Position numbers and translations under genes: made by a program. Below, piece by piece: positions 14,010-43,765 of a stretch of 43,765 nucleotides of DNA. Location of the stretch: the sequence record ON286972.1. One strand, 5' to 3'. Position 1 is the first letter of the stretch. Each line of letters starts with the position of its first letter. A model generated the notes under the pieces. It was not told the DNA's origin. It saw only the letters and a program-made list of their open reading frames with translations, and ran no database searches.

Positions 14010-14218
14010 ATTTATATCTAGTAGAAGGTACAGTGCAGGTTTTCCGTTTTGATGGTGATCGTGGTATGCGTTTCTCACATGTTGAAGAATTTAAATTTGT
14101 CGTACATGCAGAAGGTGAGTACGAAGCTGAGATTAAAGTATCTGAATCCTTTGATAAGAAAGAAACCGTAGATGTACAGTATCAGCAACTACAATTTAAA
14201 GTGTGGCCTACGCTTTAA
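14006..14218 (+). CDS. hypothetical protein
   Basis: ATGA coupling. Confidence 0.7.
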   Translation: MNLYLVEGTVQVFRFDGDRGMRFSHVEEFKFVVHAEGEYEAEIKVSESFDKKETVDVQYQQLQFKVWPTL

Positions 14219-14222
14219 AAAC

Positions 14223-14251
14223 TTGACACGCATGTAAAAAGCGAGTATTAT
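14223..14251 (+). promoter_or_regulatory. sigma70 promoter
   Basis: TTGACA-17-TATTAT. Confidence 0.75.
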
Positions 14252-14282
14252 ATCTGTATTATGAATTAACTGAGGAATACGT

Positions 14283-14948: not shown

Positions 14949-15190
14949 TGTTAATTTTATACGTTGTACTGATTTTATTAGTTAACTTTTCTCCAACTAT
15001 TTTAACTTTAGTATGGGGTAAATTTTATGATGCTGTAAAAGTATTTCTCTTGAATACTGCATGGGTATTGGTAAGTCTGACTCTTTATTGGTCTACTGAT
15101 TGGATGATGATTGTGAGTCATATACTACTATATATTTCATTCCTAATGTTGTTCCAAGAAAAAGAAGTACTTGACAAACTTGAAGGTTAG
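14948..15190 (+). CDS. membrane protein
   Basis: TAATG coupling; hydrophobic. Confidence 0.7.
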   Translation: MLILYVVLILLVNFSPTILTLVWGKFYDAVKVFLLNTAWVLVSLTLYWSTDWMMIVSHILLYISFLMLFQEKEVLDKLEG

Positions 15191-15199
15191 ACCTATAAT
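15171..15199 (+). promoter_or_regulatory. sigma70 promoter
   Basis: TTGACA-17-TATAAT preceded by AGTACT. Confidence 0.85.
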
Positions 15200-15222
15200 A
15201 TCCTTCTACTAAGGGGGATATT

Positions 15223-15483
15223 ATGGCAGTAGGTTTTGGTTCACCTGATAACCACCAAGAAACAATACAAGCAACAATTGATAATGCTATTGACTTTGCT
15301 CGCTCAAATCTGTATAGTGGTGAGTCTGAAGAGTACTGCATCGACTGTGACTGTGAGATACCAGAGAAGCGGAGGTTAGTACTGAAGGGTGTAAAACGAT
15401 GTGTTCAGTGTCAATCAAAGGTTGACAAGGTATATCAAGAGCGTTATAATAGACGTGGAAGTAAAGACAGCCAACTCCGTTAA
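15223..15483 (+). CDS. ybiI: DksA/TraR family C4 zinc-finger protein (YbiI-like)
   Basis: CIDC..EIPEKRR..GVKRCVQCQ and the C-terminus YNRRGSKDSQLR as in enterobacterial YbiI. Confidence 0.9.
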   Translation: MAVGFGSPDNHQETIQATIDNAIDFARSNLYSGESEEYCIDCDCEIPEKRRLVLKGVKRCVQCQSKVDKVYQERYNRRGSKDSQLR

Positions 15484-24214: not shown

Positions 24215-24652
24215 ATGACACGCATTAACTTAGTACATGTTAAAGAACTTGCTGACCAACATCTGATGGCTGAATATCGTGAACTTCCACGTGTGTTTGG
24301 TGCTGTACAAAAACATGTTCAAGCACGTAAGCGTGTACGTGATTTCAAAATTAACAGTACTTATCTGTTAGGTTCAGGTCATGTAACATTCTTCTACGAC
24401 AAGTTACTATACTTACAGAAGCGTCATATTGATATTGTTAACGAATGTTTGCGTCGTGGTATGAAGATTCAAAACACTGAAGTAAACGACATTAGCGGCT
24501 TCCCTGCTGAGTTTTGTAATGACTACGTACCATCGGAGTCCGAGATTAAAACATCACGCGAGCGTTTGATTGAGAAGCTTCAGATGAAGCCTAAGTGGTA
24601 TAAGTTTACTGATGTTGAGCTACCTATATATTATGTTGATATGATACAATGA
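24215..24652 (+). CDS. denV: pyrimidine dimer DNA glycosylase / endonuclease V
   Basis: [35 protein letters not shown] closely follows T4 DenV. Confidence 0.97.
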
Positions 24653-26869: not shown

Positions 26870-26907
26870 CAAAAGGGTTGACTTCGGTCAGCCCTTTTTG
26901 CTATAAT
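26870..26907 (+). promoter_or_regulatory. fused terminator/promoter element (copy 9)
   Basis: AAAAGGGTTGAC-TTCG-GTCAGCCCTTTTT-GC-TATAAT. Confidence 0.9.
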
Positions 26908-26935
26908 TATTTCATCAACTGATGAGGACAACGAA

Positions 26936-27706
26936 ATGACCAGAGAAGCACGCAGCATTCAAATTCAGAAAAACTTCAACTCCATGATGGTTGCTCTTGA
27001 GTGTTTGCTCGATGATAGCAGTACTGTAAAAAGTATGGTTGTCAGCGGTGCTCCTGGTGTTGGTAAGACTTACACCCTCTCTAAACGCCTCCAGAAAGCA
27101 CATGACGCGGCAGAATGGAACGTAGCTACCATCAGTGGTAAAATGACCACTCTGGCTCTGTACGAAGTTCTGTACAAGAATCGTCATAGCACCAACGTGT
27201 TAGTACTGGATGATATGGACAGCATCTTTGATTCAGAAGACGGTATGAACCTGCTCAAAGCAGTACTGGATAGTGGCAAGCGTACTGTTTCTTATATGAC
27301 TAGCTCGAAGTATCTGAGCAGCAACGGTATCCCTAACAGCTTTGATTTTAATGGTCGCATCGTATTCATTACTAACAAAGATTTAGCACTGAATGCTAAA
27401 GCTAAAACTAAAATGTCTGCTCACTATGCTGCTCTTATGTCTCGCTCTGTATACGTTGACTTACAGATCCAGACCAAAAGCGATATCATGATTCACATTG
27501 AGAACGTGATGAACCAGACCAACATTCTGGAATCTAAGGGTATTAACAGTAATGGTAGTAAAGCAATCCTGAACTGGATGTTGAAGCACGAAGATTCACT
27601 TCGTTCACCTTCACTGCGTATGCCACTGTTGATTTCGGCAGTATATAACAACAACCCATACGATTGGGAAGAGCAATGTGAAAACTTGTTCCTGGAGAAA
27701 AATTAA
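26936..27706 (+). CDS. AAA-type P-loop ATPase
   Basis: Walker A GAPGVGKT, Walker B LVLDD, sensor-like FITN, SRS. Confidence 0.85.
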   Translation: MTREARSIQIQKNFNSMMVALECLLDDSSTVKSMVVSGAPGVGKTYTLSKRLQKAHDAAEWNVATISGKMTTLALYEVLYKNRHSTNVLVLDDMDSIFDSEDGMNLLKAVLDSGKRTVSYMTSSKYLSSNGIPNSFDFNGRIVFITNKDLALNAKAKTKMSAHYAALMSRSVYVDLQIQTKSDIMIHIENVMNQTNILESKGINSNGSKAILNWMLKHEDSLRSPSLRMPLLISAVYNNNPYDWEEQCENLFLEKN

Positions 27707-27925
27707 TTGATAACACATAACATCGATAAGGTCATGTTATTATATGCATGTATTAACATGATTGTCGTTTTAGTTAAAGTTTATGGATGGTTTCATACAC
27801 TTGATATTGATACTGAAAAGGAGTATAATCCTCAAGAAGCATCTCTTGGATTAAAAATTATTGTTTTAATTAGCGTAGTATCCGTATACATGGTATTACT
27901 ATCAACTATGATTAAGTTCACTTAA
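27707..27925 (+). CDS. small membrane protein
   Basis: TTG start adjacent to stop; two TMs. Confidence 0.55.
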   Translation: MITHNIDKVMLLYACINMIVVLVKVYGWFHTLDIDTEKEYNPQEASLGLKIIVLISVVSVYMVLLSTMIKFT

Positions 27926-27935
27926 CGAGGAACAT

Positions 27936-28268
27936 ATGATTAATTTATTTTCAACTGAGGTTATGATTAAAATTACATTAGTATACATATGTCTATTCGT
28001 ATACTACCACGCTCTCATCGGAATCTTGTGGTTCTTTAAGAAAGGTCGTATTCTTGAGAAATTGTACCCAGACTATATGATATTGTATACAATTGTCCAG
28101 GGTGTAGGAATAGTACTGGGAATTCTAGTGCACTTGATATATTTGTTTGAACCACACCTTCCGTGTATTACACAATACATTGTATTCGGAACTACTATTA
28201 TGTGGCTTGTAATGATGGGTGTGTATGGTCTGTATTTGTACAGGAAACGTATAGTGGGAGATTTCTAA
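27936..28268 (+). CDS. 3-TM membrane protein (paralog array)
   Basis: WFFKK after TM1; GAGGA RBS. Confidence 0.75.
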   Translation: MINLFSTEVMIKITLVYICLFVYYHALIGILWFFKKGRILEKLYPDYMILYTIVQGVGIVLGILVHLIYLFEPHLPCITQYIVFGTTIMWLVMMGVYGLYLYRKRIVGDF

Positions 28269-28621
28269 TGCAAGAGGTTATTAAATGGTTGACAACCAGT
28301 GATATTGCTAGTACACTGAACTATGTACTCATTATCTTATATCCGTTTTTGATGGTTCTAAACTTCATTGGATGGTATTTCAAACGTCCAATTTACTACA
28401 AGATTAATAATTCAGAGTACTATGAAAGTGTTGTAATTGCAACCTCAATCACGTATACTATGGGTGCGGTTCTTACAGTCATAGGATTAGGTCAAGGTGA
28501 TAATCTTAACTTTATGCTATGTACCTTTGTTATGATATGTATTCCAACACTAATTGTAATTCTATCGAATATTGTGTGGAAAAAAATGTTATTTGCACGC
28601 AACAAAATACCGGAGGCATAA
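28268..28621 (+). CDS. 3-TM membrane protein (paralog array)
   Basis: WYFKRP; TAATG coupling at 28268. Confidence 0.75.
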   Translation: MQEVIKWLTTSDIASTLNYVLIILYPFLMVLNFIGWYFKRPIYYKINNSEYYESVVIATSITYTMGAVLTVIGLGQGDNLNFMLCTFVMICIPTLIVILSNIVWKKMLFARNKIPEA

Positions 28622-28956
28622 TGGAGTACTTTATCAGTTTACTACCGTGGTACTTGAAAGTAAGTACAATTTACTACATCATTTCCGCTGGGTTTTATTT
28701 CTTGATGTGGTTCTTTAAACGTCCAATCAGTGAATTCATCGATAATCATATGATGAGTTTTAAACTTCACTGCTGGTTTTGGTCATCGTCAGTGATGCCA
28801 TTCATCCATTACGGAATTATCAGTACTGGTAAACGTTCTAATGGTGAAATCATTTCCTTGGGTTTTTACTGGATATCGACTATTGTTTACATTGGTGTGC
28901 TTTTGTATCCATTTGTAGTTAAACTACGAAACTCTATCCCAGATCACAGGAAATAA
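28621..28956 (+). CDS. 3-TM membrane protein (paralog array)
   Basis: WFFKRP; GGAGG RBS before ATG 28621. Confidence 0.75.
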   Translation: MEYFISLLPWYLKVSTIYYIISAGFYFLMWFFKRPISEFIDNHMMSFKLHCWFWSSSVMPFIHYGIISTGKRSNGEIISLGFYWISTIVYIGVLLYPFVVKLRNSIPDHRK

Positions 28957-28957
28957 T

Positions 28958-29278
28958 ATGAAGATTCAATTTATTCTTTTCACAGTAAGTGCATTCTACT
29001 TTTGGGTTTGCTGGATTGGTTTTCTCTTTGCACTAAAACCATTTGACTTCTATGCAAAGCAGTGTAAAAATGCTGCTGTTGGTAATGTAGCTTTTACATT
29101 GCTTAGTACATTATGGGTAGTACTGATTATATTCAATCCACCTGATAATGATTTGGAAATGTCATTGTGTACATTATTTGCAGGACTGTGTGTATTCGCA
29201 GCATTCTGTAGTTATATTGGAAAGTTATGTTCTTTGGTATCAAATTTCCATCGTAAACAAAAAGATAAGAGGGTATAA
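28958..29278 (+). CDS. 3-TM membrane protein (paralog array)
   Basis: FALKPF; same TM layout. Confidence 0.75.
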   Translation: MKIQFILFTVSAFYFWVCWIGFLFALKPFDFYAKQCKNAAVGNVAFTLLSTLWVVLIIFNPPDNDLEMSLCTLFAGLCVFAAFCSYIGKLCSLVSNFHRKQKDKRV

Positions 29279-29661
29279 TGTACACAACAATATATGTTAT
29301 TCTTAATATCCTAAGTGCATGTCTAACAATAGGTGCATTAATATACATTGGAAAGTTCTTTTGTGTAAAGTTCGTCGAAGATGTGTATGAGGATATTGAA
29401 TCCGACTACGAATCTAAGTGCTTCTTCCATGTTGGATATATCATTTGCTTAGTAACCACTATCTTCACATGGATTGTATACGTATTCGGGATTGGAATCA
29501 CTTCAATTGGTGAACCAGTACTGTGCATTATTGGATTAGTGTTTTCTTCAATATTCGGGTTATTGTTCATGATTATTCTTATGTATAATTTAATCTGTAC
29601 TGCTATTGTTCCTTTCTTTTATGAAATTCACAATAACATTAAACGTAAGAAACGAGGTTAA
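29278..29661 (+). CDS. 3-TM membrane protein (paralog array)
   Basis: FFCVKF; same TM layout. Confidence 0.75.
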   Translation: MYTTIYVILNILSACLTIGALIYIGKFFCVKFVEDVYEDIESDYESKCFFHVGYIICLVTTIFTWIVYVFGIGITSIGEPVLCIIGLVFSSIFGLLFMIILMYNLICTAIVPFFYEIHNNIKRKKRG

Positions 29662-29663
29662 TT

Positions 29664-30017
29664 ATGTTTTCTCCTGCTGGACAAGTTATATTCATGGTAT
29701 GTACACTGGTATTCTTTATGTTGTCTGTACTATTTGTGATGAAATTCTTTCACATGAAACCATTCAGTACTTGGTATGATAATATTGTGTACTATATTGG
29801 TAATGCTATAACACTCTTTTCAGTTGCATACTATTTCGGTTATTTTGCAATGCTATTTGGGTTATTACTTGAAGCTCGTGCATTGCTTGTAGCTGGTATG
29901 GTGGCAGATTTAATGTGTCTAACACTAGCTTGTATTGGATTTACTGTATGTATGTCGTTAACCATTTTTGACAAATTATGTAAACTACACAAACGTTTAG
30001 GTGAGAGGATGAAATAA
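29664..30017 (+). CDS. 3-TM membrane protein (paralog array)
   Basis: FFHMKPF; same TM layout. Confidence 0.75.
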   Translation: MFSPAGQVIFMVCTLVFFMLSVLFVMKFFHMKPFSTWYDNIVYYIGNAITLFSVAYYFGYFAMLFGLLLEARALLVAGMVADLMCLTLACIGFTVCMSLTIFDKLCKLHKRLGERMK

Positions 30018-30400
30018 TGACTTACCGTGATTACTTTTGTATTTTTGAAATTGCAGTATTCGCTTTAGGTTCAGTCTGGTTACTTCTATACTACTTCTGT
30101 ATTAATCCAGTATTCAATTGGGTTCGTCGTGCTGAACAAAGTAGTGCTGGACAAATAGCAGTTGTTATGGGTATGACATATTATATGTTCGCCGTGGCTT
30201 CTGTTGTTATTGAAGTAATATTTGGTGGCATGAATGGTGATGATGGGGCAACGTTCTATGGATTCGTAACATTCTTTAGTGTGCTGATTCCGTGTGGTGC
30301 TCTTATTATTACTGCGTTCTATTGGCTATATCGTGGTGTTAAGAAGCTGGAATCAATTCACGTAGATATGCGTTCAAAACGAATGGGGATTGACAAATAA
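30017..30400 (+). CDS. 3-TM membrane protein (paralog array)
   Basis: YFCINPV; same TM layout. Confidence 0.75.
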   Translation: MTYRDYFCIFEIAVFALGSVWLLLYYFCINPVFNWVRRAEQSSAGQIAVVMGMTYYMFAVASVVIEVIFGGMNGDDGATFYGFVTFFSVLIPCGALIITAFYWLYRGVKKLESIHVDMRSKRMGIDK

Positions 30401-30951
30401 TGAAACGAAGTTCTAATGTCATTCGCGAACGATTTCGTAAAGTAAAAACTATTAAGTACGGGACTATTGCTCTTGTACTTAGTAGTACTTTTATTATGAC
30501 AGGATGTGAACGCTCTGAAGATATTTCTGTATATCAGAATGTGGACCAATGTAAAAGAAGTGGTAGCAATCCGGTACAGTGTGAAGATGATTATAAAAAA
30601 GCACTAACTGAATCGGAAAAGGTAGCACCAAAATATAGTTCACAAAGTGATTGCTCTAGTGATTTTGGTAATCAGTGTCAACAGCATAGCTCTGGATTCT
30701 TTTGGATGCCAATTATGAGTGGATTCCATAGTAGTGGTAATGGGTTTGCTAGTCAACCACTATACAACTCTAAAGGGAACTACTATGATGCTGGTGGTAA
30801 CTCCTACGGTAGCAGTACTGCAAAAGGTACAACACGTACTGTATCAAGTTCCGCATTAGCTCCAAAACCTCCTACAACGACCACAATCACCCGCAATGGG
30901 TTTGGGTCTTCAGTAGCCAGAAGTGCCGCTCACACGAGTTCTGGTGGATAA
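30400..30951 (+). CDS. ygiB: DUF1190 / YgiB-like lipoprotein
   Basis: MKRS..FRK leader, MTGC lipobox, YQNVDQC, APKY...DC..FG, FWMPIMSG, APKPPTTTTITRNGFG match enterobacterial YgiB. Confidence 0.9.
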   Translation: MKRSSNVIRERFRKVKTIKYGTIALVLSSTFIMTGCERSEDISVYQNVDQCKRSGSNPVQCEDDYKKALTESEKVAPKYSSQSDCSSDFGNQCQQHSSGFFWMPIMSGFHSSGNGFASQPLYNSKGNYYDAGGNSYGSSTAKGTTRTVSSSALAPKPPTTTTITRNGFGSSVARSAAHTSSGG

Positions 30952-30952
30952 T

Positions 30953-30980
30953 AAAAAAGCCCACATTAAGTGGGCTTTTT
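30953..30980. terminator. bidirectional intrinsic terminator
   Basis: AAAAAAGCCCAC-ATTAA-GTGGGCTTTTT between convergent blocks. Confidence 0.9.
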
Positions 30981-30981
30981 G

Positions 30982-33006
30982 TTATTTGTGTTTTATGTGT
31001 AAAGTGTCTAATATTGTATTGAACAATGATTTAGCAGAAATCATGATTACTTGATCAAAATCTTTAGTATAAGAAATATTAGCAGTACTGGAAGAATCTT
31101 TCACCTCATCCGGTAATGCATCAAACTCTTCTTTTTCCATAATCTTTTCAAGTTCTTCACGAGAAATGGCTTTTACGTTTTCAATAGTCCTTAGTTGTAT
31201 ATTATAATCTTTATAATACGAAACTAAGTTCGTTGCGTATGAACCATCTTTAGATGCTGTTCCAGTAAAATCATAACATCCTGTATCAGTACTAACCCAA
31301 TCGATTTTCCCTGAACTACCACTATATACACCTTTGTTGAACTTAATGTTAACAACATCACCAATAGTTTTCAATATACCACCTTTACATTCATTAAATG
31401 CGTTTAATTGATAACTTGTAGTCATATAGAATTTCGGTTCTAATGTAACAGTATCACCTACAGTTGCTTTCATATCAGAAACACTTAAGAACAATTCATT
31501 AAATCCTTTTGAATAAGTCTTGGTAATTGTTGTTCCATCCCTGTTAGTTACTGTGTATTCTAAGTCCAATTCACAAATACTATTCAATGATAAGTAAGGG
31601 ATATCAAATTTATCAGTACTAGCATCATAAGGACATCTTGAGGATGGTAGTATACCAGTAGGGTTTGGTACGTATTGAACTTTTGTTAACTCATACCCGC
31701 TTGCATTCGCTGGTGTAACTGTAATAGACGGTGTAGATATTCCTTTCATTCCACAGAAGTATATGTTATCTGGAAAATCATTTATTACGAAGTCAGTGAC
31801 AGGAATATCATAAGTATCTTTATCAGTCCAATTAAGAACAACATTAGAACTGGTTGGATCAACAATATGTTCACTAGAACCACAGAAATATACTGATTTG
31901 GTATTAGTAATCATTAGTAATGTTTTGGATGATGAGTTCAATTCAAGAACATCTTTCACTTCAAGACCAGATGGTAATGTCAATGGTAACTTCGTAAATG
32001 ATGTTAAATCTTGTTCATCTTTAACACCACTAGTCCCCGCCGGAAACTTACCTGAACCATAGAAAACACCTTTATTCGTCATGAAATACATGAACGGGGT
32101 TGATGTTCCTTTGTCAAATAGTTGAATGTCATCACATGTTAAACCATCAGGTAAATCCACTTTAGATGGAGTTCTATAAACACCAGGCTTAATACCACCT
32201 TCACCATTACTTACATCACCTAGTACATATAAATCTTTACCTAGTTTCAAGAACATTGATTTATTTTTAGCACACAAGAATGTATCATATGATTTATCAT
32301 CAATTGGTAGCTTGGTATATTCGGTGTATGTAGGCATTGAATCATCAATCCACGAACTATCACCACTAATGTAAATGTGATTGTTTCTGTCAATATAATA
32401 TGAATACACATCAGTACTGTTCATATATAAAGCATTTAGTGCATTTGTTTTCACTAAGTGATTGAACTTAAGAACTTGTTTTCCATCGTACTTATGGGAG
32501 TTGACACCAATATCACCATTTAGGCTACTACCAATTGAATATATATGACCACGTGGTAATAGAACTTGAACACCACTTTTGGTTAAATTATATTTGGAGT
32601 GCAAGAGATCGTTATATACAACTCTAACTTTCTTAAAGATATCAGTACATTCAATCCACGATTTAGATGGTGTACCATCCATTCCTATTATTGCCGGATC
32701 ACCATAATAATAAGCTTTATTTTCATATGATATTTTAAAAGATGATTTACCATCTTTTGTATTAGCACTGAAGTACACATCTTTACTATCTTTAATTGGA
32801 TAAGTACTATTCTCTACAAAAGTATTATATGAGATATCGTTGTTAGCACTATTAAGAACAAAAGAAGTAGATGTACTATTGGACTTATAGACTGCTACGG
32901 AAGATGTATCACTGAAATCAATTTTAGTGAACGTATCTTTGTATGTTTCGTTTAATAATCCTACATAAAAAACATCAGTGCCATCCATCAGTAACGAATA
33001 TAGCAT
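30982..33006 (-). CDS. RCC1-like beta-propeller protein, 3' part of a frameshifted gene
   Basis: LYVLGDVSNGEGG, FYGSG, YFCGS blades; joins 33919 ORF if 4 nt are removed. Confidence 0.65.
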   Translation of the reverse strand: MLYSLLMDGTDVFYVGLLNETYKDTFTKIDFSDTSSVAVYKSNSTSTSFVLNSANNDISYNTFVENSTYPIKDSKDVYFSANTKDGKSSFKISYENKAYYYGDPAIIGMDGTPSKSWIECTDIFKKVRVVYNDLLHSKYNLTKSGVQVLLPRGHIYSIGSSLNGDIGVNSHKYDGKQVLKFNHLVKTNALNALYMNSTDVYSYYIDRNNHIYISGDSSWIDDSMPTYTEYTKLPIDDKSYDTFLCAKNKSMFLKLGKDLYVLGDVSNGEGGIKPGVYRTPSKVDLPDGLTCDDIQLFDKGTSTPFMYFMTNKGVFYGSGKFPAGTSGVKDEQDLTSFTKLPLTLPSGLEVKDVLELNSSSKTLLMITNTKSVYFCGSSEHIVDPTSSNVVLNWTDKDTYDIPVTDFVINDFPDNIYFCGMKGISTPSITVTPANASGYELTKVQYVPNPTGILPSSRCPYDASTDKFDIPYLSLNSICELDLEYTVTNRDGTTITKTYSKGFNELFLSVSDMKATVGDTVTLEPKFYMTTSYQLNAFNECKGGILKTIGDVVNIKFNKGVYSGSSGKIDWVSTDTGCYDFTGTASKDGSYATNLVSYYKDYNIQLRTIENVKAISREELEKIMEKEEFDALPDEVKDSSSTANISYTKDFDQVIMISAKSLFNTILDTLHIKHK

Positions 33007-33919
33007 TTCTATTATTACATAAAGAAGTAATATTTTTTACTACTTTATTTGAATTATAGTTTGGTAACTTCTTTAATCCACGAACAAAATTATCACAAAT
33101 AATACCAGTACCATAGAAGTTATAATCTTTATCACAGTATATAAATGCTGTATCATATGGTGAAGTACTTAAATTCTTATAGAATGGGAATGGAGTGAAT
33201 GTGAATTGTAGAACCTTACGCAATTCCCCTACTGTCTCTGTTGGGAATTGTCTGTTTTTATTATTACCAATAAAAACAACTCTATCTGTTAGGAATGTGT
33301 ACATAATTCCATATGGTTTTACGTACAAATCATTATATCCCAATGATAATTTAGTTGGTGATGTTAGTGGTCCTGAGTTTATTTTGGTTTGATTAATTGA
33401 AAACTCATTAGAATTATAACCAGCCCCATATGTATTACCATTAGTACTTAAATAATATACAGTAGCTTCCCCTGCTCCAAGAAAAGTCTTTACATCAGTT
33501 GCTAACGTTTTTTGGAAAGTTGGATAAAATTTATTATATGTTCCCGTTCCCATCATCAGTTCACCATTGCGGTTATGACCACGAGCATATAGAATACCTT
33601 TGTCTGTATCTAAGAAGAACATACCATTATATGTTTTGTAAATCTTACCTTTTGTAATATCGAAATTGGAAAAATCATCACTAATATCAATGAATATTGT
33701 CTCAAGATTATCTTCAAGGGAGTTTAGAGATTTACCACAATACCATACTGAGTTATCTTTTTTAACAGCAACACAACCACACGGACTGGCATCAAAATAT
33801 GTTACATCGGAAAGAACCAGAGATAAGTTCTTTGTACTGCAATAGTTATCCATTGCATATAAATCGGAATCTTTAAGTATATATACGGAATTCCCAACCG
33901 CTTTAATCGAATTTATCAT
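32975..33919 (-). CDS. RCC1-like beta-propeller protein, 5' part of a frameshifted gene
   Basis: GAGGA RBS before ATG 33919; LYARGHNRNGEL, TYGAGYNS blades. Confidence 0.7.
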   Translation of the reverse strand: MINSIKAVGNSVYILKDSDLYAMDNYCSTKNLSLVLSDVTYFDASPCGCVAVKKDNSVWYCGKSLNSLEDNLETIFIDISDDFSNFDITKGKIYKTYNGMFFLDTDKGILYARGHNRNGELMMGTGTYNKFYPTFQKTLATDVKTFLGAGEATVYYLSTNGNTYGAGYNSNEFSINQTKINSGPLTSPTKLSLGYNDLYVKPYGIMYTFLTDRVVFIGNNKNRQFPTETVGELRKVLQFTFTPFPFYKNLSTSPYDTAFIYCDKDYNFYGTGIICDNFVRGLKKLPNYNSNKVVKNITSLCNNRNAIFVTDGWH

Positions 33920-33983
33920 GTTTATATCCTCATAAATTGATACCAATTCTAATGTATTTACCCACTTAAAGTACAAAAAATGA

Positions 33984-34140
33984 TCAATTAAATGGGGAAT
34001 CTTTAACAAATGAATTCATGATGTACTTGATGAATTGCCCATACCAACGGATTCCTCAGTCCCAGCATACCACATGGTATTATCGAACTTTTTATCATTG
34101 TAGTATCATAACCACACCAAACATCATCAACATTAGTATT
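33984..34140 (-). pseudogene. decayed relic of a propeller-array gene
   Basis: NTNVDDVWCGYDTTMI / KFDNTMWYAG (1-nt shift) / SFVKDSPFN* resemble blade 1 and C-terminus of neighbours. Confidence 0.7.
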
Positions 34141-35491
34141 ACAACAATTGTATTTCTGTGAGTGTTTGATATGTTGTACCGTTGTACACACCTCTCCAAT
34201 ATACCCTACCTTCAGTACTAACCACTAATAATCCATATGTTGTAAACCCAAGAGTACCACCAACATACATAGCATCTTTAATTCGAATACCAATGTCTTC
34301 ATATGTAAATGAAGCGACTGCTCCCGCTTGCCACGAAGGACTAGCGTAGTAATCACTATAAACACCATGTGCTTTATATATTGATGTTGTTCCTGGTTCA
34401 AAAATTACAGTTCCACAGTAGTTCATTCGTATTTTAGTACTGGATGAAGTCGGTACATTTATACCTATGCCATCTTTTATCCCTGTAGTTAGGACGTTAA
34501 AACCACCCGCCACACGGTTGACGTCATTCTCACCGATTAAAAACATACCAACGTTGTAGCCCATATAATATACACTGCTACTGCCATTCCAGAAAGAAAA
34601 ACCACCACCATTACCACAGCGATATAGTTGTGAATTTGAGCAGTACATCATACCTTCGTTTGTCGCATCAAATTCATCTGCTGTTCCTATTGTAGCTACA
34701 GTAGTCCACGTTTTAATCACTTGGTTTGTACTAGCTGGTGTTTGTATACCATATCGTATATTATATCCCTTACCAACGATTGTACCATCTTCTAATTTAG
34801 CATAAAGTACAGGTCTATTACCAACAAAATACATATTATTGTGTGACATGTCTATTGTGCATCTTAATGAAACTACTTTTTGTGTCAATTGATTATCTTT
34901 AGTAAAAGAAGTAAAGTAGTAATCCGATGTTGAGTTGTTTATTAAACCTTGTATTGACAATCCCATATACCAGATTTCACCATTGCTGTTTAATGCTGCC
35001 AAAATACAACTATATTTTGAAGTGTATGCTGGTGATGTTGTTGAAGTTGCTGGTCCTTTATCATATCCACCACAGAATACCATCTCCACAACTTCACCTA
35101 CGTTCGAAAAATAAGAAGATACATTGATAAAACCATTTGTTATAAAAGGTGCTGTATTCATACTTGAATGTGTGAATATCCCATTTGCATATACACCACA
35201 AAAATGATATGAACCATCATTATCTTGGACTATTATTCCATTTGATAGTAACCAAAAATTGTTTACATTTTTTCTTACTAATTCAACTCCTGCACCATTG
35301 GTTGGTGTTATACCAAAAGAAACATATTTTGTTTGACCAATACCATATAAATTTCCATTAGTTGCTAGTATTGCACCAAACCAGTTCCCACCACCATTCC
35401 TATCATGACCCATACCAATGGAGTCAAATTTCTTCACAGTAGGGACTTCAACTTTATTCCCATACTCTAGCATTCTAACAAAAGGTAACAT
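34139..35491 (-). CDS. MLPFVRM-leader RCC1-like beta-propeller protein (450 aa)
   Basis: true start at MLPF with AAGGAGG RBS; LYGIG, IWYMG, VYWRG blades. Confidence 0.85.
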   Translation of the reverse strand: MLPFVRMLEYGNKVEVPTVKKFDSIGMGHDRNGGGNWFGAILATNGNLYGIGQTKYVSFGITPTNGAGVELVRKNVNNFWLLSNGIIVQDNDGSYHFCGVYANGIFTHSSMNTAPFITNGFINVSSYFSNVGEVVEMVFCGGYDKGPATSTTSPAYTSKYSCILAALNSNGEIWYMGLSIQGLINNSTSDYYFTSFTKDNQLTQKVVSLRCTIDMSHNNMYFVGNRPVLYAKLEDGTIVGKGYNIRYGIQTPASTNQVIKTWTTVATIGTADEFDATNEGMMYCSNSQLYRCGNGGGFSFWNGSSSVYYMGYNVGMFLIGENDVNRVAGGFNVLTTGIKDGIGINVPTSSSTKIRMNYCGTVIFEPGTTSIYKAHGVYSDYYASPSWQAGAVASFTYEDIGIRIKDAMYVGGTLGFTTYGLLVVSTEGRVYWRGVYNGTTYQTLTEIQLL

Positions 35492-35555
35492 ATATCCTCC
35501 TTTATTCATTATATTATATTTAATCAAAAAAGAAAAGCCAGTACAGAGTACTGGC
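35460..35555 (-). repeat. array junction repeat 1 (hairpin, T-tract, TAAATA, RBS, leader codons)
   Basis: GCCAGTAC-TCT-GTACTGGC TTTTCTTTTTTGATTAAATATAATATAATGAATAAAGGAGG..ATGTTACCTTTTGTTAGAATG. Confidence 0.95.
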
Positions 35556-35566
35556 ATTTAAAATAA

Positions 35567-36742
35567 TCAAAATGTAGGAAGTTTGAATTCTCTCATAACA
35601 GATGAACTGCTTGCAGATACATTATCTGGTGATTTCCCTGCGTAGTATAATTTATTATCAATGAACATATACAATGTTGCATCATTTCCTGCTACAAGTG
35701 ATTCACTTTTCTTAAATTTAACACCACTAGGTAAAATTGCTTCAACAAATGAACCTGATTCTCTTGTAGTATTATTTGCCAATTGACCATTGTTATTATA
35801 ACCAGTACTATAAATTTTACCTGAACTATAATATACGAGTCCACGAGTACTAGTGTTTTCTATTCGAATGAATTCACTATCATCTGGGACTGTAGTTGAT
35901 AGAACTGGGTTTAACTTATAAGCAGATGATACATTATTATTACCCAATTGACCATAACCTTGAAAGCCTAGTGTATACATAGGACATGATTCTGGTGTGC
36001 CTTTTGTTATAATACCAATATAATTCACACTACAAAAAATGTCTATTGCTTCTGTAATAGGTGTACCCTTATATTGAACCCAAGGGAATACATACGATTG
36101 TTGCTTACCATTTCCCAAAGTACCGGAAGTTGTTGTCCCAGTACGCCACATTGTATCATCAAGTTTAATAATCCAGTTAGCTGTCGTTATCGATGAACAG
36201 AATTTTTTAACATTATCCACTAAAAATGTAAATTGATTATAATATGATGCAGTGTTTATACCAAACTTAGCACCAGTATTATCACCTAACAAATATAAAC
36301 TATTATCTGTACCTAAAATCAAAGCATAATCATAACCCACGTATATATCTTTAATTCTTGAAATTCCAAATTGTGTAAAATAGCTTGTACATTCTGTGAA
36401 TGTTGTTATATTATTGGTTGTATTATTACCTAGCCATTTATCTAAACCACTATAAAAGAATCTATCATCATTTGTGCGTATTAGACAAAAAGCGTTCATT
36501 GTACTGCACCAAAAATCTTTAACATTGCTATATATTTTTGTCCATTCAGTTACTGCATTAGTATGACCTAAACCAAAAATTCCACCATTCTGAAGACCAA
36601 TAGCCCATATTGAACCATTTTTATCAAGCATCATTGTACATGTATGTGAATAACCACCCGATGGTGTAACTAATTTAACAAAATTGGGAATATATGGTAA
36701 AACTTTATTTCCATAATCCAACATTCTAACAAAAGGTAACAT
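35567..36742 (-). CDS. MLPFVRM-leader RCC1-like beta-propeller protein (391 aa)
   Basis: IWAIGLQNGGIFGLG, YTLGFQGYGQLGN, YSTGYNNNGQLAN. Confidence 0.9.
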   Translation of the reverse strand: MLPFVRMLDYGNKVLPYIPNFVKLVTPSGGYSHTCTMMLDKNGSIWAIGLQNGGIFGLGHTNAVTEWTKIYSNVKDFWCSTMNAFCLIRTNDDRFFYSGLDKWLGNNTTNNITTFTECTSYFTQFGISRIKDIYVGYDYALILGTDNSLYLLGDNTGAKFGINTASYYNQFTFLVDNVKKFCSSITTANWIIKLDDTMWRTGTTTSGTLGNGKQQSYVFPWVQYKGTPITEAIDIFCSVNYIGIITKGTPESCPMYTLGFQGYGQLGNNNVSSAYKLNPVLSTTVPDDSEFIRIENTSTRGLVYYSSGKIYSTGYNNNGQLANNTTRESGSFVEAILPSGVKFKKSESLVAGNDATLYMFIDNKLYYAGKSPDNVSASSSSVMREFKLPTF

Positions 36743-36809
36743 AATTCCTCCTTTATTCATTATACTATATTTAATCAAAAAAGAAATGCCAGCATCAAGT
36801 ACTGGCATT
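36710..36809 (-). repeat. array junction repeat 2
   Basis: same unit, hairpin with one mismatch. Confidence 0.95.
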
Positions 36810-36813
36810 ATTG

Positions 36814-38004
36814 TTATAGTTGTCTTGGTGTATCAAGTACATATCTATTTGTACTAGGACCACCATCATCATACGTTCCGGTTGAATATATATTTTTCAT
36901 ATCAGCAGTTAGAAAAGTACGATACGAACCGCGATATATTTTTATTTTATCATACATAGAATATGATATTTCTGCTGGCATTGGACATATAGTAAATCTA
37001 CCAATAGTAACATTAGAACCAACACCCAACGAACCAGCATAACTACTCGCATTTAAACCAGTTGCATATACACCAGTACTCGTAACTAGTATACTAGATT
37101 GTGTTGGGTATCCTGTATGAATTGAATACAAAGTTCCAGTTGGTAATGTCGTACTATTGCTCCCTAATACAGCAAGTGCCGAACTGGTTGTGGTATTGTT
37201 ACCCCATGCACCATTACTCGCTAAACCACCAACTAGAAACTGACGTGCACCAGTACTTGGATTCTCAACCAAAGCACTGACTGCACCACTTGAGCATCCA
37301 GTGTATTGTAACGTTTTTGTGTATGTTGTACTTGGTTTATATAAAGTATATTCATTAAATGGTGTCCATGTGGTACTGGTACTTATACCTGACGTACCAC
37401 CACCAATATATAAATTATTTTGTGTATCAAAAAACATTACACAGTTATTTGTTGACTGTATTTGTGCAATATCAACATTAGGCGTGACAGCTTTTACAAA
37501 TGATCCATCTGTTATTTGTTGAGTACTACCAGTACCATCAGCGAATTGTCTAGCCCCACTCCAACCAGTACTCCATATTGTATTATTATCCATTAATACC
37601 GTAAACCACGTAGTACCTCCATACATCTGTTTAATTGAAGTACTTGAACTTTGCGTGTACAAATTTTCAATATATTGGTTATAACTTAAAAACGTAGTAG
37701 TACTAGTTGGTAAACCAATATGATCACCATATCCACAATAAAAATAATTTGAGTCATTATCTTGTACTAACAAAGTTCCTTGTGACACCCAGAAATCTTT
37801 AACATTTTCTCTAATTAAGGTCCATGACTTTACTGCATTACTATTTCCTATACCAAACTTCCCAAAACTATTATTTCCACGTGCGTATAGTTGACCATCC
37901 GTATAAAGAACGACAACATCTAAATCAGTTGGTGTTATTTTCTTAATTTGAATAGGGACTGGTGTTATATTCCCATAATCAAACATTCTAACAAAAGGTA
38001 ACAT
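36814..38004 (-). CDS. MLPFVRM-leader RCC1-like beta-propeller protein (396 aa)
   Basis: LYARGNNSFGKFGIG, VYATGLN..GSLGVG. Confidence 0.9.
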   Translation of the reverse strand: MLPFVRMFDYGNITPVPIQIKKITPTDLDVVVLYTDGQLYARGNNSFGKFGIGNSNAVKSWTLIRENVKDFWVSQGTLLVQDNDSNYFYCGYGDHIGLPTSTTTFLSYNQYIENLYTQSSSTSIKQMYGGTTWFTVLMDNNTIWSTGWSGARQFADGTGSTQQITDGSFVKAVTPNVDIAQIQSTNNCVMFFDTQNNLYIGGGTSGISTSTTWTPFNEYTLYKPSTTYTKTLQYTGCSSGAVSALVENPSTGARQFLVGGLASNGAWGNNTTTSSALAVLGSNSTTLPTGTLYSIHTGYPTQSSILVTSTGVYATGLNASSYAGSLGVGSNVTIGRFTICPMPAEISYSMYDKIKIYRGSYRTFLTADMKNIYSTGTYDDGGPSTNRYVLDTPRQL

Positions 38005-38069
38005 ATTTCCCTCCTTTATTCATTATACTATATTTAATCAAAAAAGAAAAGCCAGTATCAAGTACTGGC
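37972..38069 (-). repeat. array junction repeat 3
   Basis: same unit; hairpin 38051-38069. Confidence 0.95.
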
Positions 38070-38075
38070 CTATAT

Positions 38076-39245
38076 TTAAACTGGTGAATCTAATACAAAT
38101 TCTAAACTACTAATGCCACCATATGTGACATTTGTCCCTGTGCTATATACAAAATTACCATCAGTTATATAAGTTCGGTTATACCCACCTGCCATCTGCG
38201 ACTTACTATAATCAAACCCATCAGGAACGATTGCTTTGGTATATACTAATGCATTATTAGATGTACCAATACCTAACATACCAGCTCCTGAAGATTTATT
38301 GTAGCCGCAACAATATATACCATCTGTTGTAGCAATAACTTGGTTATAATATGAAGTAATGTTAGCAATGCTTACTACATCACCGGGTGGCATTAGTGAA
38401 GCAGTTTGAACCTCAAATGCTCTATAATCACTGAGAGAACCATTTATCCCATCTGCTTGTGCACCAAATATTCTCGAACCGCCATTTGCGATGATGGTTT
38501 TACCAGTGGGATCAGTACCAATTGCCATTGCCATTGAAGTACTATTCTCCATATAGTACTTGATATTAATTGTATTTCTTAAGCTGGTAGGAGCACCATA
38601 ATATATAGTATATAACTTACCTCCTGAACTTGTAACTGCATTTACTCTTCCTGTATAAAATAGCCATCCTTGGTTTGTAACATAACCGTGCATTAAATTA
38701 CTTGCAAACAATTTAACAGGTAATTGATCTGCTGCGGTCGGAACAGTACTTTTGACGAATTTTCTAGCAACATTGTTAGTTGTTGTCCCATCACCCAACT
38801 GACCATCACCCCCTGCTCCAGTACTCCATATTGTTTGGTCTGTTAGTAATACACTTGTAGTCTGATAACTAACTGCTATATCTAATATTGGTAATGTTAA
38901 CGTATCGAATGTTGGCATAGCAGAAGTCCATATTGATACTGCTGCCCCTGGCATACCAACAGTTGTTGAACTTCCACTGTACCATATTTCATCATTGCTT
39001 TTCTTAATAACTATCGACGTGGCTCCCATCCAAAAATCTTGAACATCAGAAGTGCTAAAAGTCCATGTAGTAACAATATTTTTGTGACCTAAACCCAAAA
39101 GACCATTTGTATTCTCACCACGCACATATAAATCACCACTGTTTGTTAAAACAGCAACATTATAGTTGTTAGCTAGTATTTTTTTAATATTTGGTTTAGC
39201 AGGTGCAATATTCCCATACTCTAACATTCTTACAAAAGGTAACAT
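38076..39245 (-). CDS. MLPFVRM-leader RCC1-like beta-propeller protein (389 aa)
   Basis: LYVRGENTNGLLGLG, IWSTGAGGDGQLGDG. Confidence 0.9.
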   Translation of the reverse strand: MLPFVRMLEYGNIAPAKPNIKKILANNYNVAVLTNSGDLYVRGENTNGLLGLGHKNIVTTWTFSTSDVQDFWMGATSIVIKKSNDEIWYSGSSTTVGMPGAAVSIWTSAMPTFDTLTLPILDIAVSYQTTSVLLTDQTIWSTGAGGDGQLGDGTTTNNVARKFVKSTVPTAADQLPVKLFASNLMHGYVTNQGWLFYTGRVNAVTSSGGKLYTIYYGAPTSLRNTINIKYYMENSTSMAMAIGTDPTGKTIIANGGSRIFGAQADGINGSLSDYRAFEVQTASLMPPGDVVSIANITSYYNQVIATTDGIYCCGYNKSSGAGMLGIGTSNNALVYTKAIVPDGFDYSKSQMAGGYNRTYITDGNFVYSTGTNVTYGGISSLEFVLDSPV

Positions 39246-39309
39246 AATTCCTCCTTTATTCATTATATTATATTTAATCCAAATAAGAAAGCCAGTATCA
39301 AGTACTGGC
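39210..39309 (-). repeat. array junction repeat 4
   Basis: same unit; hairpin 39291-39309. Confidence 0.95.
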
Positions 39310-39315
39310 ATTGTG

Positions 39316-40425
39316 TTATTTCGGTAAATCAATTTTAGTAAAGACTGCAACATCCTCGCTTGCACCGGGAATGGCGTAATACGTTCCAGTACTATATACA
39401 TCTCCATTTTTGGTTAATATTGAAGTCAAACCATCACTAAAAAGAACATCCCTAATCTCACTAACTTCAACGGGTAATTGTAAATTTGTAGCACTATATA
39501 TAGCACCAGTTTGAGAATTGTTTAATCCCAAACCACGGTTCGCCCCAACACCCTTCTGATATGTACTGGTAATTACCATTTGTGTAGCAGTATTTAATGC
39601 AGGTGAATTCGTCATAAACAACGGAGAACTATTAGGCAAAGTACTTACAGGAACTGCACGGAATGTAGTCGTACCTGAACTAAGAAAGTTTGGAGTTTGA
39701 CCACATACGAAATATGATGTACCATTATAGTAATTAAATGCATTACCACCAATCGCTGCATCGATTACACCAGAACTACGTAATCCCCAAGTGTTAATTT
39801 GTGTTTGGTCCCCTGTACCATGCTGCCCACTGCTATTCCATCCAGAACTATATAGCTTATTATCTAATGTAATATACATACTATCATTTGCATTAGTCAT
39901 TACTTTACGCACGTTAGTAGCACATTGAGTTAATGTGTAAATCGATGATGAGCCAATACCTAAAGAACCACGATATCCATTATCTCCTGCACCATAGAGT
40001 ACTGAACTAGTGCTAAGTACAAATATTAAACCATTTGTACATACAATATTAGCAATTTCACTCACTGGTATAGCATTGGTAAACCAATTAGTCCTTTCAA
40101 CTAATATAGTACTGTAAGAAGTAGTTGTAGAAGATGAGAACCAGTACGTTTCACCCGATGTCCATATCGTATTATCATTTTTAATAATAACAAGTGTACG
40201 ACCACCCACGAAAAAATTAGAAACATCTGAACTTACTAATATCCATGAAGATACCGTGTTGTTATTACCATTTCCAGATTCACCACCTTGATTTCTACCT
40301 ATGTAATATAAATCATGTGAATCAGTCAATAAGAATTGACCCTGTGTAGAAGCACCAACTTTAATTATATTTTTAGGACCGGGTACAATATTCCCGTACA
40401 CTAACATTCTTCCAAAAGGTAACAT
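39316..40425 (-). CDS. MLPF-leader RCC1-like beta-propeller protein (369 aa)
   Basis: LYYIGRNQGGESGNG, LYSSGWNSSGQHGTG. Confidence 0.9.
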   Translation of the reverse strand: MLPFGRMLVYGNIVPGPKNIIKVGASTQGQFLLTDSHDLYYIGRNQGGESGNGNNNTVSSWILVSSDVSNFFVGGRTLVIIKNDNTIWTSGETYWFSSSTTTSYSTILVERTNWFTNAIPVSEIANIVCTNGLIFVLSTSSVLYGAGDNGYRGSLGIGSSSIYTLTQCATNVRKVMTNANDSMYITLDNKLYSSGWNSSGQHGTGDQTQINTWGLRSSGVIDAAIGGNAFNYYNGTSYFVCGQTPNFLSSGTTTFRAVPVSTLPNSSPLFMTNSPALNTATQMVITSTYQKGVGANRGLGLNNSQTGAIYSATNLQLPVEVSEIRDVLFSDGLTSILTKNGDVYSTGTYYAIPGASEDVAVFTKIDLPK

Positions 40426-40490
40426 AATTCCTCCTTTATTCATTATACTATATTTAATACAAAAAAGAAAAGCCAGTACTCTGTACTGGC
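40390..40490 (-). repeat. array junction repeat 5
   Basis: same unit; hairpin 40472-40490. Confidence 0.95.
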
Positions 40491-40498
40491 ATATTACA

Positions 40499-41641
40499 TT
40501 ATTTCCACGGTAGAAGTGAATCAGGAACTCTGGTTGGTACTCTAACGGCTGGAACATTTCCAAGTTCAGGTAAACCACTCATATACAAATTGTTATTTTC
40601 ATCAATTATCATTGAATAGAAATTATCAATTACGAAGCCTGAAATTCGTCTTCCTTCTAATGCATCAAGAACCATTTCGGTGAAAGTTAGTATATTTTCG
40701 GATGTTTGATTAACACCACATGCACCATAGGTATTTCGACCACAAGTATATAACTTATTATTATTTTTAACAACACATCCATTCCCTTCGTTGTTGGATA
40801 AACCACCCACCAACTCTATTTCACCTTGGAATGATAAATTGGGAATTAATGTACTCATTGGTACTGCTGATACTGTACCTACACCAGCTTGACCATATGC
40901 ATTTGGTGAAGCAACCTTCACTGAACCATCATTAAGAAATATATATGAAGTACGGTATGTATTTACAGCTTGTATAGCATTGGTGATAGTATTGTCTTTT
41001 GTAAAACTTAATATATTTGATGTTTTTGTACTACCAGGAGCAACAGTATTTCCTGCATACCAATAGGAGCCATCATCAAGTACTAACCCAGTACTGAGCA
41101 AAGAACAGCCATAACTTTTAACATTTTCTATAGTGCTGTATCTGAACGATGTGACATTAGCTGTTGACGCGTTACCAAATACACCACCTTCGCCAGAACC
41201 ACAGTAGAACCATTTTCCATTTTTTAAAAATACACGCAAATTCTGCCCAACAGCAATACCATCAATATCATCAGCACTGACACCAAAATCAGTGAAGTAC
41301 TGGGTTACATCAATCCAAACCCCATTTGTATTTGTTCCGATTTGTGGCATTACTATACTAGCACCTGTGAACCAAATAGTTCCATCATTCTTAATGGCAA
41401 TGGAACCAAGAACACCACCCCAGTAACGTTCAATATTATTATTCACACGGGTCCATACGGTGGATGATTGTAATGAACCATTACCACCTTGTCCAAATGA
41501 AGATGAACCATACCAGTACAAGTCACCATTAACATGCAAATAAAAACGAGTATTATAATTTGCTTGTAATCTATTTTTAAATAGAGGTTTTGGTTCCGGT
41601 GCAATATTCCCGTACTCTAACATTCTAACAAAAGGTAACAT
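40499..41641 (-). CDS. MLPFVRM-leader RCC1-like beta-propeller protein (380 aa)
   Basis: LYWYGSSSFGQGGNG, LYTCGRNTYGACGV. Confidence 0.9.
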   Translation of the reverse strand: MLPFVRMLEYGNIAPEPKPLFKNRLQANYNTRFYLHVNGDLYWYGSSSFGQGGNGSLQSSTVWTRVNNNIERYWGGVLGSIAIKNDGTIWFTGASIVMPQIGTNTNGVWIDVTQYFTDFGVSADDIDGIAVGQNLRVFLKNGKWFYCGSGEGGVFGNASTANVTSFRYSTIENVKSYGCSLLSTGLVLDDGSYWYAGNTVAPGSTKTSNILSFTKDNTITNAIQAVNTYRTSYIFLNDGSVKVASPNAYGQAGVGTVSAVPMSTLIPNLSFQGEIELVGGLSNNEGNGCVVKNNNKLYTCGRNTYGACGVNQTSENILTFTEMVLDALEGRRISGFVIDNFYSMIIDENNNLYMSGLPELGNVPAVRVPTRVPDSLLPWK

Positions 41642-41710
41642 AATTTCCTCCTTTATTCATTATACTATATTTAATACAAATAAGAAATGCCAGTACTCTG
41701 TACTGGCATT
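41600..41710 (-). repeat. array junction repeat 6
   Basis: same unit; 11-bp stem 41686-41710. Confidence 0.95.
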
Positions 41711-41713
41711 ATA

Positions 41714-42856
41714 TTATTTCCACGGTAGAAGTGAATCAGGAACCCTTGTCGGTACATTTGTAGTAGACACCCCATCAAGATTTGGTACACCGCATGTATA
41801 TAAATTATCAGCATCGTCAACTAACATCGTATAGTTATATCCCCTACAAAAACTACTAACATTACGACCTTCTAATGCAGTAAGAATCATTTCAGTGAAT
41901 GTTGTTATATTTGTCGAGGTTGAACCAACACCACATTGTCCATTTGAATTAAGACCACATAAAAATAACTTATTATCATTTTTAATTATACAGGATGGTC
42001 CAGTAAGGTTTGTACCAAGCTCACCCACTAACTCTATTTCACCTTGGAATGCTAAATTTGGAATTAATGTACTCATAGGGGCTGGTGTTGTATTCCCAGT
42101 ACCTGCTTGACCACGTTCGTTGGAAGATGCAACTTTAACTGTTCCATCACTAAGAAATATATAGGAAGTTTCAATTGTATTGACTGCTTTAATTGCAGTG
42201 CTGATAGAAGTTTCTTGTGTAAATCTTAGCACGTTTTGTGCTGACGTTCCCGATATAAACGTATTACCTGCATACCAATATGTACCATCATTGAGTACTA
42301 ATGCAGTACTTCGAATTGCACAACCAGCACTTCGAACATTTTCTATAGTACTGTACGTGAATTGTGAAACGCTTGCCGATGAACCATTTCCGAATACACC
42401 ACCACTCCCAGCACCACAGAAGAACCACTTTCCATTTTTCAAAAATACACGCATACACGCAGATATAACAATACTATCAATATCATCAGCACTGACACCG
42501 AAATCAGCAAAGTGCGATGTCACATCAACCCAAACACCGTTAGTGTTTGATGCAATTACTGGAATAACAGAACTTGTACCAGTGTACCAAATAGTACCAT
42601 CTTTCTTTATCGCTATTGTTCCTTGAACACCACCCCAATATCGTACAACATTTGTATTGACGAGAGTCCATGCGGTTGAAGAGTTCAATGAACCATTACC
42701 ACCTTGACCATATGATGAAGAACCAAACCAATATAGATTACCATTGGTGTGTAAATAAAATTTGGCATCTGCCGAGCATTGTAACCTATTTTTTAATCGT
42801 GGTGCGGGTTCCGGTGCAATATTCCCGTACTCTAACATTCTAACAAAAGGTAACAT
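41714..42856 (-). CDS. MLPFVRM-leader RCC1-like beta-propeller protein (380 aa), close paralog of 40499 gene
   Basis: same length, identical first 17 and last 12 residues. Confidence 0.9.
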   Translation of the reverse strand: MLPFVRMLEYGNIAPEPAPRLKNRLQCSADAKFYLHTNGNLYWFGSSSYGQGGNGSLNSSTAWTLVNTNVVRYWGGVQGTIAIKKDGTIWYTGTSSVIPVIASNTNGVWVDVTSHFADFGVSADDIDSIVISACMRVFLKNGKWFFCGAGSGGVFGNGSSASVSQFTYSTIENVRSAGCAIRSTALVLNDGTYWYAGNTFISGTSAQNVLRFTQETSISTAIKAVNTIETSYIFLSDGTVKVASSNERGQAGTGNTTPAPMSTLIPNLAFQGEIELVGELGTNLTGPSCIIKNDNKLFLCGLNSNGQCGVGSTSTNITTFTEMILTALEGRNVSSFCRGYNYTMLVDDADNLYTCGVPNLDGVSTTNVPTRVPDSLLPWK

Positions 42857-42868
42857 AATTCCTCCATA

Positions 42869-43765
42869 TTATTTAAAAACATACTGCGTATTAACACGAG
42901 TGCCATTGTCAAAACCAAGTACATAAAATATCTCAGCACTATTCTTAGAACCAAATAACGCACCAGTACTACTACTCAAAGTAGTATTAACCGCTAAGGG
43001 AATCCATATGTCTTCTTCTGCATCGTATCTCAATAAATTTAATGCACCATACGACACTGCATATATATTTTTATCATATGTACTGTAACATATTTTACTA
43101 GGGTTATTACCACCAACTGGTGCTATGTTAGACCACACCGCACTTTGTATATGATATTTTTGTGCAGTACTAGTACCTTGACCAGTAATATATATGTAAG
43201 TACCATCCGTACACATATCACCACCTCCATTGTTATTTGTTCCATCACTTGTACCTAATGATGACCATGTATTAGTACTTGGAGTATAACTGTATAACGA
43301 ATTATTAGTAGGCGAACCCCACAAATATATCTTATCCCCAGCAGTAATCATCTTACTATACGCCAGTTGACTAGGCTTCCCAATACTGTTAGTGTTCAGA
43401 ATCCATGTATTTGTACTTATATTATATACATAAAAATTATTACTACTATTACCTGAACCACCAAACAAATATATTTTTCCCTGATAAGCACATAACGCAC
43501 TACCAAATGTAGATACAGGTGCATTGGCTAATTGTGACCACGTTCTTGTAGTTAAATTAAAACTCCATAACTGATTATCCGTCTGCACCGCATTCTGTAT
43601 ACCACCAAATATATAAGCAATATTACTTTCCGCATCATACGTATAACCAAAGTTATTTCGTGCTGAAGGTACTGGTGATGTAGTAAATTGTGTTCGTACT
43701 CCACCATTTGGGCCAGGTAATGGACCTACATTCCCGAACTCAAACATTCTTACAAAAGGTAACAT
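42869..43765 (-). CDS. MLPFVRM-leader Kelch-repeat beta-propeller protein (298 aa)
   Basis: YIFGG, IYLFGG, LWSFNLTTRTWSQL, YVYNISTNTW Kelch motifs; ATG is the last codon of the window. Confidence 0.9.
   Translation of the reverse strand: MLPFVRMFEFGNVGPLPGPNGGVRTQFTTSPVPSARNNFGYTYDAESNIAYIFGGIQNAVQTDNQLWSFNLTTRTWSQLANAPVSTFGSALCAYQGKIYLFGGSGNSSNNFYVYNISTNTWILNTNSIGKPSQLAYSKMITAGDKIYLWGSPTNNSLYSYTPSTNTWSSLGTSDGTNNNGGGDMCTDGTYIYITGQGTSTAQKYHIQSAVWSNIAPVGGNNPSKICYSTYDKNIYAVSYGALNLLRYDAEEDIWIPLAVNTTLSSSTGALFGSKNSAEIFYVLGFDNGTRVNTQYVFK

Follow-up and report, generated by a model that had tools for sequence, protein, structure and literature searches.

A GATG tandem duplication divides a long RCC1-like gene of Escherichia phage A4 that is intact in its relatives

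Escherichia phage A4 (ON286972.1) is an Asteriusvirus jumbo coliphage with a genome of 355,528 bp, which originates from farm animal faeces in Ireland and has E. coli LF82 as its host of isolation. It was sequenced from Nextera XT libraries with Illumina MiSeq and assembled with MetaSPAdes at 98x, and the reads are deposited under PRJNA828263 (PMC9355613). The stretch analysed here, referred to as the window, comprises the final 43.8 kb of the record (43,765 nucleotides), and each window coordinate equals the record coordinate minus 311,763. Window positions 30900-34200 match the record with 100% identity. A disrupted gene is located on the minus strand at 30982..33919, as the final member of an array of RCC1-like paralogues encoded on that strand (34139-43765), and it is convergent with a gene for a 183-aa DUF1190 protein. 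Between these two convergent genes lies a GC-rich hairpin at 30954..30980, with an 11-bp stem that includes 5 GC pairs and with T/A runs on both sides; judging by its sequence, it is probably a bidirectional terminator. In another part of the window, the label "endonuclease V" is carried by two separate GenBank CDS, A4_222 (145 aa) at 24215-24652 and A4_227 (72 aa) at 27707-27925.

The neighbouring array displays a recurrent upstream cassette. The sequence TATAATGAATAAAGGAGG combines a -10-like box with a strong Shine-Dalgarno sequence and occurs on the minus strand in six exact copies (35496-35513, 36747-36764, 38010-38027, 39250-39267, 40430-40447 and 41647-41664), each of them directly preceding a single-propeller RCC1 paralogue, while 0.02 copies are expected by chance. 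No exact copy of the cassette was found at the disrupted gene or at the 42856 gene. The equivalent position in phages Turkey3 and EC.P1 is occupied by other single-propeller paralogues. The array also varies between isolates, as an 811-nt indel polymorphism was located at window 34016/34017, in a remnant ORF of the minus strand (34003-34191). The 811 extra bases are present in the related assembly L004 and in sequencing run X3, encoding most of an additional RCC1-like gene of 307 aa, and they are absent from A4, from assembly L008 and from runs X1, X2 and X4; the remnant of A4 consists of 62 codons and ends in a blade-like motif. Concerning EC.P1 (L003), one array member at 14158-15337 is annotated as two overlapping CDS of 1032 nt and 180 nt, and this split paralogue may be a second frameshift-split case in this phage group.

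The break itself consists of GATGGATG, which occupies window 32989-32982 of the minus strand and reads CATCCATC on the plus strand. The first-pass annotation had described this site (32982..32989, minus strand) as a tandemly duplicated GATG, and the sequence is as it described. The minus strand around the break reads GTT ACT GAT GGA TGG CAC TGA, and the second GATG amounts to a +4 insertion with a frame shift of +1. Two ORFs result. The N-terminal one (A4_237, P0001) spans 32975..33919 on the minus strand and encodes 314 aa ending in RNAIFVTDGWH, followed by a premature TGA at 32977-32975. The C-terminal one (P0002) spans 30982..33006 on the same strand and encodes 674 aa; its frame is already open from 33036 and starts with MLYSLLMDGTDVFYVG at the ATG of 33006. 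GenBank presents a shorter version of this second piece (A4_236, P0008, 668 aa), starting at the ATG of 32988 (window 32988..30982), and lists A4_237 and A4_236 as separate hypothetical proteins. The offset between the two frames is +1. When the in-frame quadruplet TGGC is read as X, a reading device that makes no claim about the genetic code, the resulting read-through sequence (P0003) has 978 residues and zero stops.

Translation signals are distributed unequally between the two ORFs. A Shine-Dalgarno-like GAGGA is located on the minus strand at 33927..33931, with a 7-nt spacing ahead of the true start at 33919, and the first three residues of the N-terminal ORF (M1, I2 and N3) are invariant among the orthologues described below. 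No Shine-Dalgarno-like sequence was found upstream of either the ATG at 33006 or the one at 32988, in accordance with the earlier remark that the 33006 ATG has no good ribosome-binding site. In the non-coding stretch upstream of the start of the disrupted gene, runs X2 and X3 carry an extra T behind window 33996. As for the repeat, non-trivial tandem 4-mers occur in the window at 2.6 loci per kb, and 0.16 are expected in the 62-nt overlap of the two frames; the repeat alone is therefore unremarkable, and its significance derives from the comparison with orthologues.

Orthologues were drawn from a large protein collection and from Logan contigs. Eleven distinct orthologous proteins were identified in other assemblies, every one of them encoded by a single ORF, with 34-99% identity and a length of 977 aa in nine cases, 969 aa in one and 1332 aa in one. 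Word search with P0003 led to P0004 (977 aa, 99%), P0005 (977 aa, 83%), P0006 (969 aa, 64%) and P0007 (1332 aa, 34%), and cluster look-up added P0009-P0015, each of 977 aa. The whole A4 gene is the orthologue of the intact 977-aa P0004, P0005 and P0009-P0015 and of the 969-aa P0006. The most distant protein, P0007 (L010, 262-4260), shares the layout of two propellers and Ig-like domains and adjoins a DUF1190 gene as well, and it bears an extra C-terminal extension of 340 residues. Synteny is also retained, since the gene occupies the same position in L004, L008, L009 and L010 as in A4, convergent with the DUF1190 gene. The intact copies P0009, P0010, P0011 and P0015 are found on contigs of 351-359 kb filed as E. 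coli assemblies, O157 included. Such contigs of jumbo-phage size agree with a report that genomes of Asteriusvirus persist in isolates of bacteria (bioRxiv 10.1101/2024.12.31.630880). Among 50,697 phage records, megablast, blastn and tblastn found the long gene only in A4, and tblastn at 1e-5 with the long gene, which is strongly diverged, matched neither another phage nor the paralogues of A4 itself. Likewise, the long gene had no match in the E. coli genome and plasmid collections, and no relative was confirmed when the viral contigs of IMG/VR and the genome contigs of GTDB were scanned for patterns.

Across the break, the motif VTDG-TDV is continuous in 11/11 orthologues, and D311 and G312 are invariant. 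The DNA of A4 and L004 (SRR30543657) is 99% identical, differing by 30 substitutions and by one gap of exactly one GATG, which is the sole indel in 2.9 kb. L008 and L009 read ACA GAT GGA/GGG ACT at this site, also with one GATG, and the adjoining codons vary freely. Four studies each contributed the contigs of one run (X1-X4); aligned to 30950-34050, all four sets lack 4 nt at 32981. The close relatives thus have an uninterrupted ORF, the duplication is the sole non-triplet indel, and each piece of the A4 gene retains its homology in the frame it occupies. Apart from the A4 record, the split proteins P0001, P0002 and P0008 were encountered in a single Logan contig and nowhere else. The proposal that one extra GATG splits a propeller gene of about 977 aa is hence borne out by orthologues that are single 977-aa ORFs with one GATG, and the two-gene state was found in none of the 11.

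A rival explanation would be that A4 truly carries a single GATG and an uninterrupted gene, the second copy being an artefact of sequencing or assembly, as the first-pass annotation had also suggested. The two-copy form is indeed confined to the A4 record and a single Logan contig, both of which may come from one laboratory. This contig (SRR18825480_2584, L005, 8,647 bp) is 100% identical to window 26878-35524, GATGGATG included; SRR18825480 probably belongs to PRJNA828263 and may be the read set of the GenBank assembly itself, in which case the match would exclude an assembler artefact but would not represent an independent library. A second assembler, working on a public read set, arrived at an identical 8,647 bp, duplication included. 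To our knowledge, Illumina MiSeq does not produce 4-nt tandem insertions at consensus level in non-homopolymer sequence, and the coverage was 98x. Because the duplication is repeated by the second assembler and the platform was MiSeq at this depth, we consider an artefact very unlikely.

Both halves of the gene are under purifying selection. Nei-Gojobori dN/dS of A4 was 0.095 against L004, 0.12 against L008 and 0.20 against L009; the ratio was similar for residues 1-312 and 313-977 (0.10-0.20), with dS of up to 1.4, so that both parts evolve together, as a single coding sequence under constraint. Private amino-acid changes number three in A4 (F175I, N235K and I528M) and 0-2 in its near relatives, and the A4 gene shows no additional stop or indel beyond the GATG duplication. 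With no other lesion and only three private changes, the break is recent; its origin may lie in nature or in propagation of the phage. Of the three readings initially offered for the duplication, namely a switch, a recent inactivation and an assembly error, the second fits best with a single lesion, three private changes and purifying selection, inactivation being the probable outcome.

The architecture of the intact protein was predicted from profiles and models. The 977 residues would fold into a pair of RCC1-like propellers and, C-terminal to these, a pair of Ig-like domains. Profile comparison (hhalign) with the seven paralogues in the window that have one propeller gave two separate matches, one from residues ~10-170 onwards and one at ~393-698, and no match to these paralogues at residues 700-977. 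The first propeller region extends over about residues 10-390 (32746..33892, minus strand; hhalign probability against the paralogue profile 97.8-98.2) and the second over about residues 393-700 (31816..32739, minus strand; 97.3-97.7), both of them with matches to PF25390 and phrog_4219. In the second region of P0004, PF25390 covers protein residues 455-683 and phrog_4219 (PHROGs, E = 1.4e-30) protein residues 385-698; the PF25390 match reaches 54.5 bits and is sub-threshold (cut-off 150), as are the RCC1-like Pfam matches obtained on both halves. A blade motif (D/N-G-x-hydrophobic-Y/F-x-x-G) returns every ~50 residues from 54 to 716, and these ~14 motifs suggest a pair of propellers with seven blades each. 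At residue 312/313 the break interrupts the seventh and last blade motif of the first propeller (DGTDVFYVG; DG-x-x-V-F-Y-x-G), about 80 residues before the second propeller, and is located inside the propeller region and not between domains. The first-pass annotation had noticed that the fused blade resembles one in the 38076 gene, and the last blade of that gene does contain RTYITDGNFVYSTG.

The full-length AlphaFold model, built on an alignment of 11 sequences, is poor (pLDDT 54, pTM 0.34) and served solely to confirm the RCC1-like matches; its best Foldseek matches are the RLDs of HERC2 and RPGR, with E-values of ~1e-9 but TM scores below 0.4, and sequence search of the PDB gave only weak matches to RCC1, RPGR and HERC2. 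The C-terminal region of ~265 residues (31021..31818, minus strand) is predicted to contain two tandem Ig-like beta-sandwich domains, as seen in a model of acceptable quality for the last 278 residues (m15eccd901cd6, pLDDT 74.8, pTM 0.69). The matches of this model to Ig, cadherin, Rib and filamin-like domains were all generic (Foldseek, VIA; Z up to 7.5), and Pfam and PHROG searches of the region gave no significant match. Its folds resemble domains of adhesins, S-layer proteins and some phage tail proteins, a common arrangement that is no proof of function.

The location of the break also bears on a functional split, in which a +1 ribosomal frameshift would restore the full-length protein, or both fragments would be made and would act separately or reassemble. 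A single quadruplet reading would suffice for the former, given the +1 offset of the frames. Regarding the latter, the duplication creates the ATG at 32988, which overlaps the end of the upstream ORF and makes termination-re-initiation conceivable. However, the frameshift is not conserved, all orthologues being in frame, and GAT GGA TGG CAC TGA offers neither the slippery context nor the rare-codon/stop context of the known +1 type; programmed frameshifting is disfavoured on both grounds. Production of a separate second fragment is opposed by the missing Shine-Dalgarno sequence of the downstream piece, and the cut inside a propeller blade should destabilise the N fragment. Taken together, we regard a functional split as very unlikely.

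A different role was initially proposed for the repeat itself, namely a slipped-strand on/off switch (contingency locus) by which the phage population would toggle between one and two GATG and turn the protein on and off. The unit of 4 nt is suitable for this purpose, since each copy gained or lost alters the frame, and the ancestral ACTGATG-GC-ACTGATG already contained two GATG, which could favour misalignment. Known tetranucleotide contingency loci carry many copies, and slippage is frequent only at tracts far longer than two. Against a switch, the one-copy, in-frame state prevails in 11/11 orthologues and in the contigs of 4/4 runs, the repeat tract exists in no relative while the neighbouring codons vary freely in diverged orthologues, and no intact protein with the private residues of A4 is on record. 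A4 has only two copies and each relative a single one, so there is no tract and the proposed switch is not supported; we give it hardly any credence, although a minority of one-copy molecules may be present in the A4 stock. The lesion is most probably an ordinary strain-specific frameshift rather than a genetic switch.

We therefore consider it highly probable that the duplication is a genuine and recent mutation of the A4 lineage, which breaks a gene intact in all relatives and most likely inactivates it. GATG would have been duplicated in the 977-residue gene most simply by replication slippage or misalignment, and the +4 insertion changes the reading frame within the final blade motif of the first propeller. 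Ribosomes that begin at the true start reach a stop 3 codons past the insertion, giving a fragment of 314 residues without the end of the propeller, which is probably unstable. The remaining 665 codons stay open in the +1 frame without a ribosome-binding site, and a C-terminal piece would be made, if at all, only by inefficient re-initiation at the ATG of 32988 or 33006, 11-29 nt upstream of the stop. Because the propeller is truncated and the downstream piece has no ribosome-binding site, the gene is most likely inactivated or, at best, expresses a C-terminal piece weakly. We infer from these features a loss of function, the mutational mechanism outlined above and dispensability on E. coli LF82, where the intact form is apparently not needed for propagation since A4 grows there with the split gene.

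A further reading would see the 977-residue protein as a virion-surface or host-interaction protein of an Asteriusvirus sub-lineage, its loss in A4 as adaptive and the GATG as revertible, serving as a low-frequency toggle. Growth on the adherent-invasive LF82, or the non-lytic, persistent infection reported for A4, would be examples of such an adaptation; we see only a slight chance that all of this holds jointly. The recent frameshift mutation already has practical consequences. Together, A4_236 and A4_237 make up a single gene, and their annotation should be that of a disrupted gene instead of two hypothetical proteins. Our comparison further identifies a long type of jumbo-phage RCC1-like protein that had gone undescribed, with two predicted propellers and two predicted Ig-like domains, which appears to be limited to one Asteriusvirus sub-lineage and is under purifying selection. 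Moreover, with its gene split and growth on LF82 maintained, A4 could serve as a natural knock-out for probing the role of phage RCC1-like proteins.

The closest known systems are the RCC1-like paralogue arrays of Rak2-like phages and Asteriusvirus (GAP32 gp1, 121Q_234-248, PBECO4, phAPEC6), which share the propeller repeat together with PF25390 and phrog_4219. Array members have ~370-450 aa and one propeller, whereas the long gene has 977 aa, two predicted propellers, two predicted Ig-like domains and an upstream region of its own. Multi-copy "DNA condensation/RCC1" genes have been described in 121Q, PBECO4 and phAPEC6 (eleven copies in the latter), and the homologue gp1 of GAP32 was detected in virions by mass spectrometry (PMC5259590, PMC7247149). 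The name "DNA condensation protein" is an annotation by similarity only. Eukaryotic RCC1-like domains (RCC1, the RLDs of RPGR and HERC2, UVR8) give the best structural and profile matches of the propeller parts, but sequence E-values are only 1e-3 and the structural matches come from the low-confidence model; these matches do not support a GEF or chromatin function. The tetranucleotide contingency loci of Haemophilus and Neisseria resemble the A4 site in having a four-base unit within a coding region, whose copy number sets the frame. Their tracts are long, conserved and polymorphic in length, whereas the A4 isolate alone has two copies, against a single copy everywhere else. A further parallel is provided by the strain-specific frameshift pseudogenes and split genes of phage accessory regions, where an out-of-frame indel occurs in one isolate, the relatives are intact and the fragments are annotated as separate hypothetical proteins, exactly as in A4. 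There is no essential difference between those split genes and the one presented here, except that the mutation of A4 can be identified exactly, as the tandem duplication of 4 nt, and assigned a recent date.
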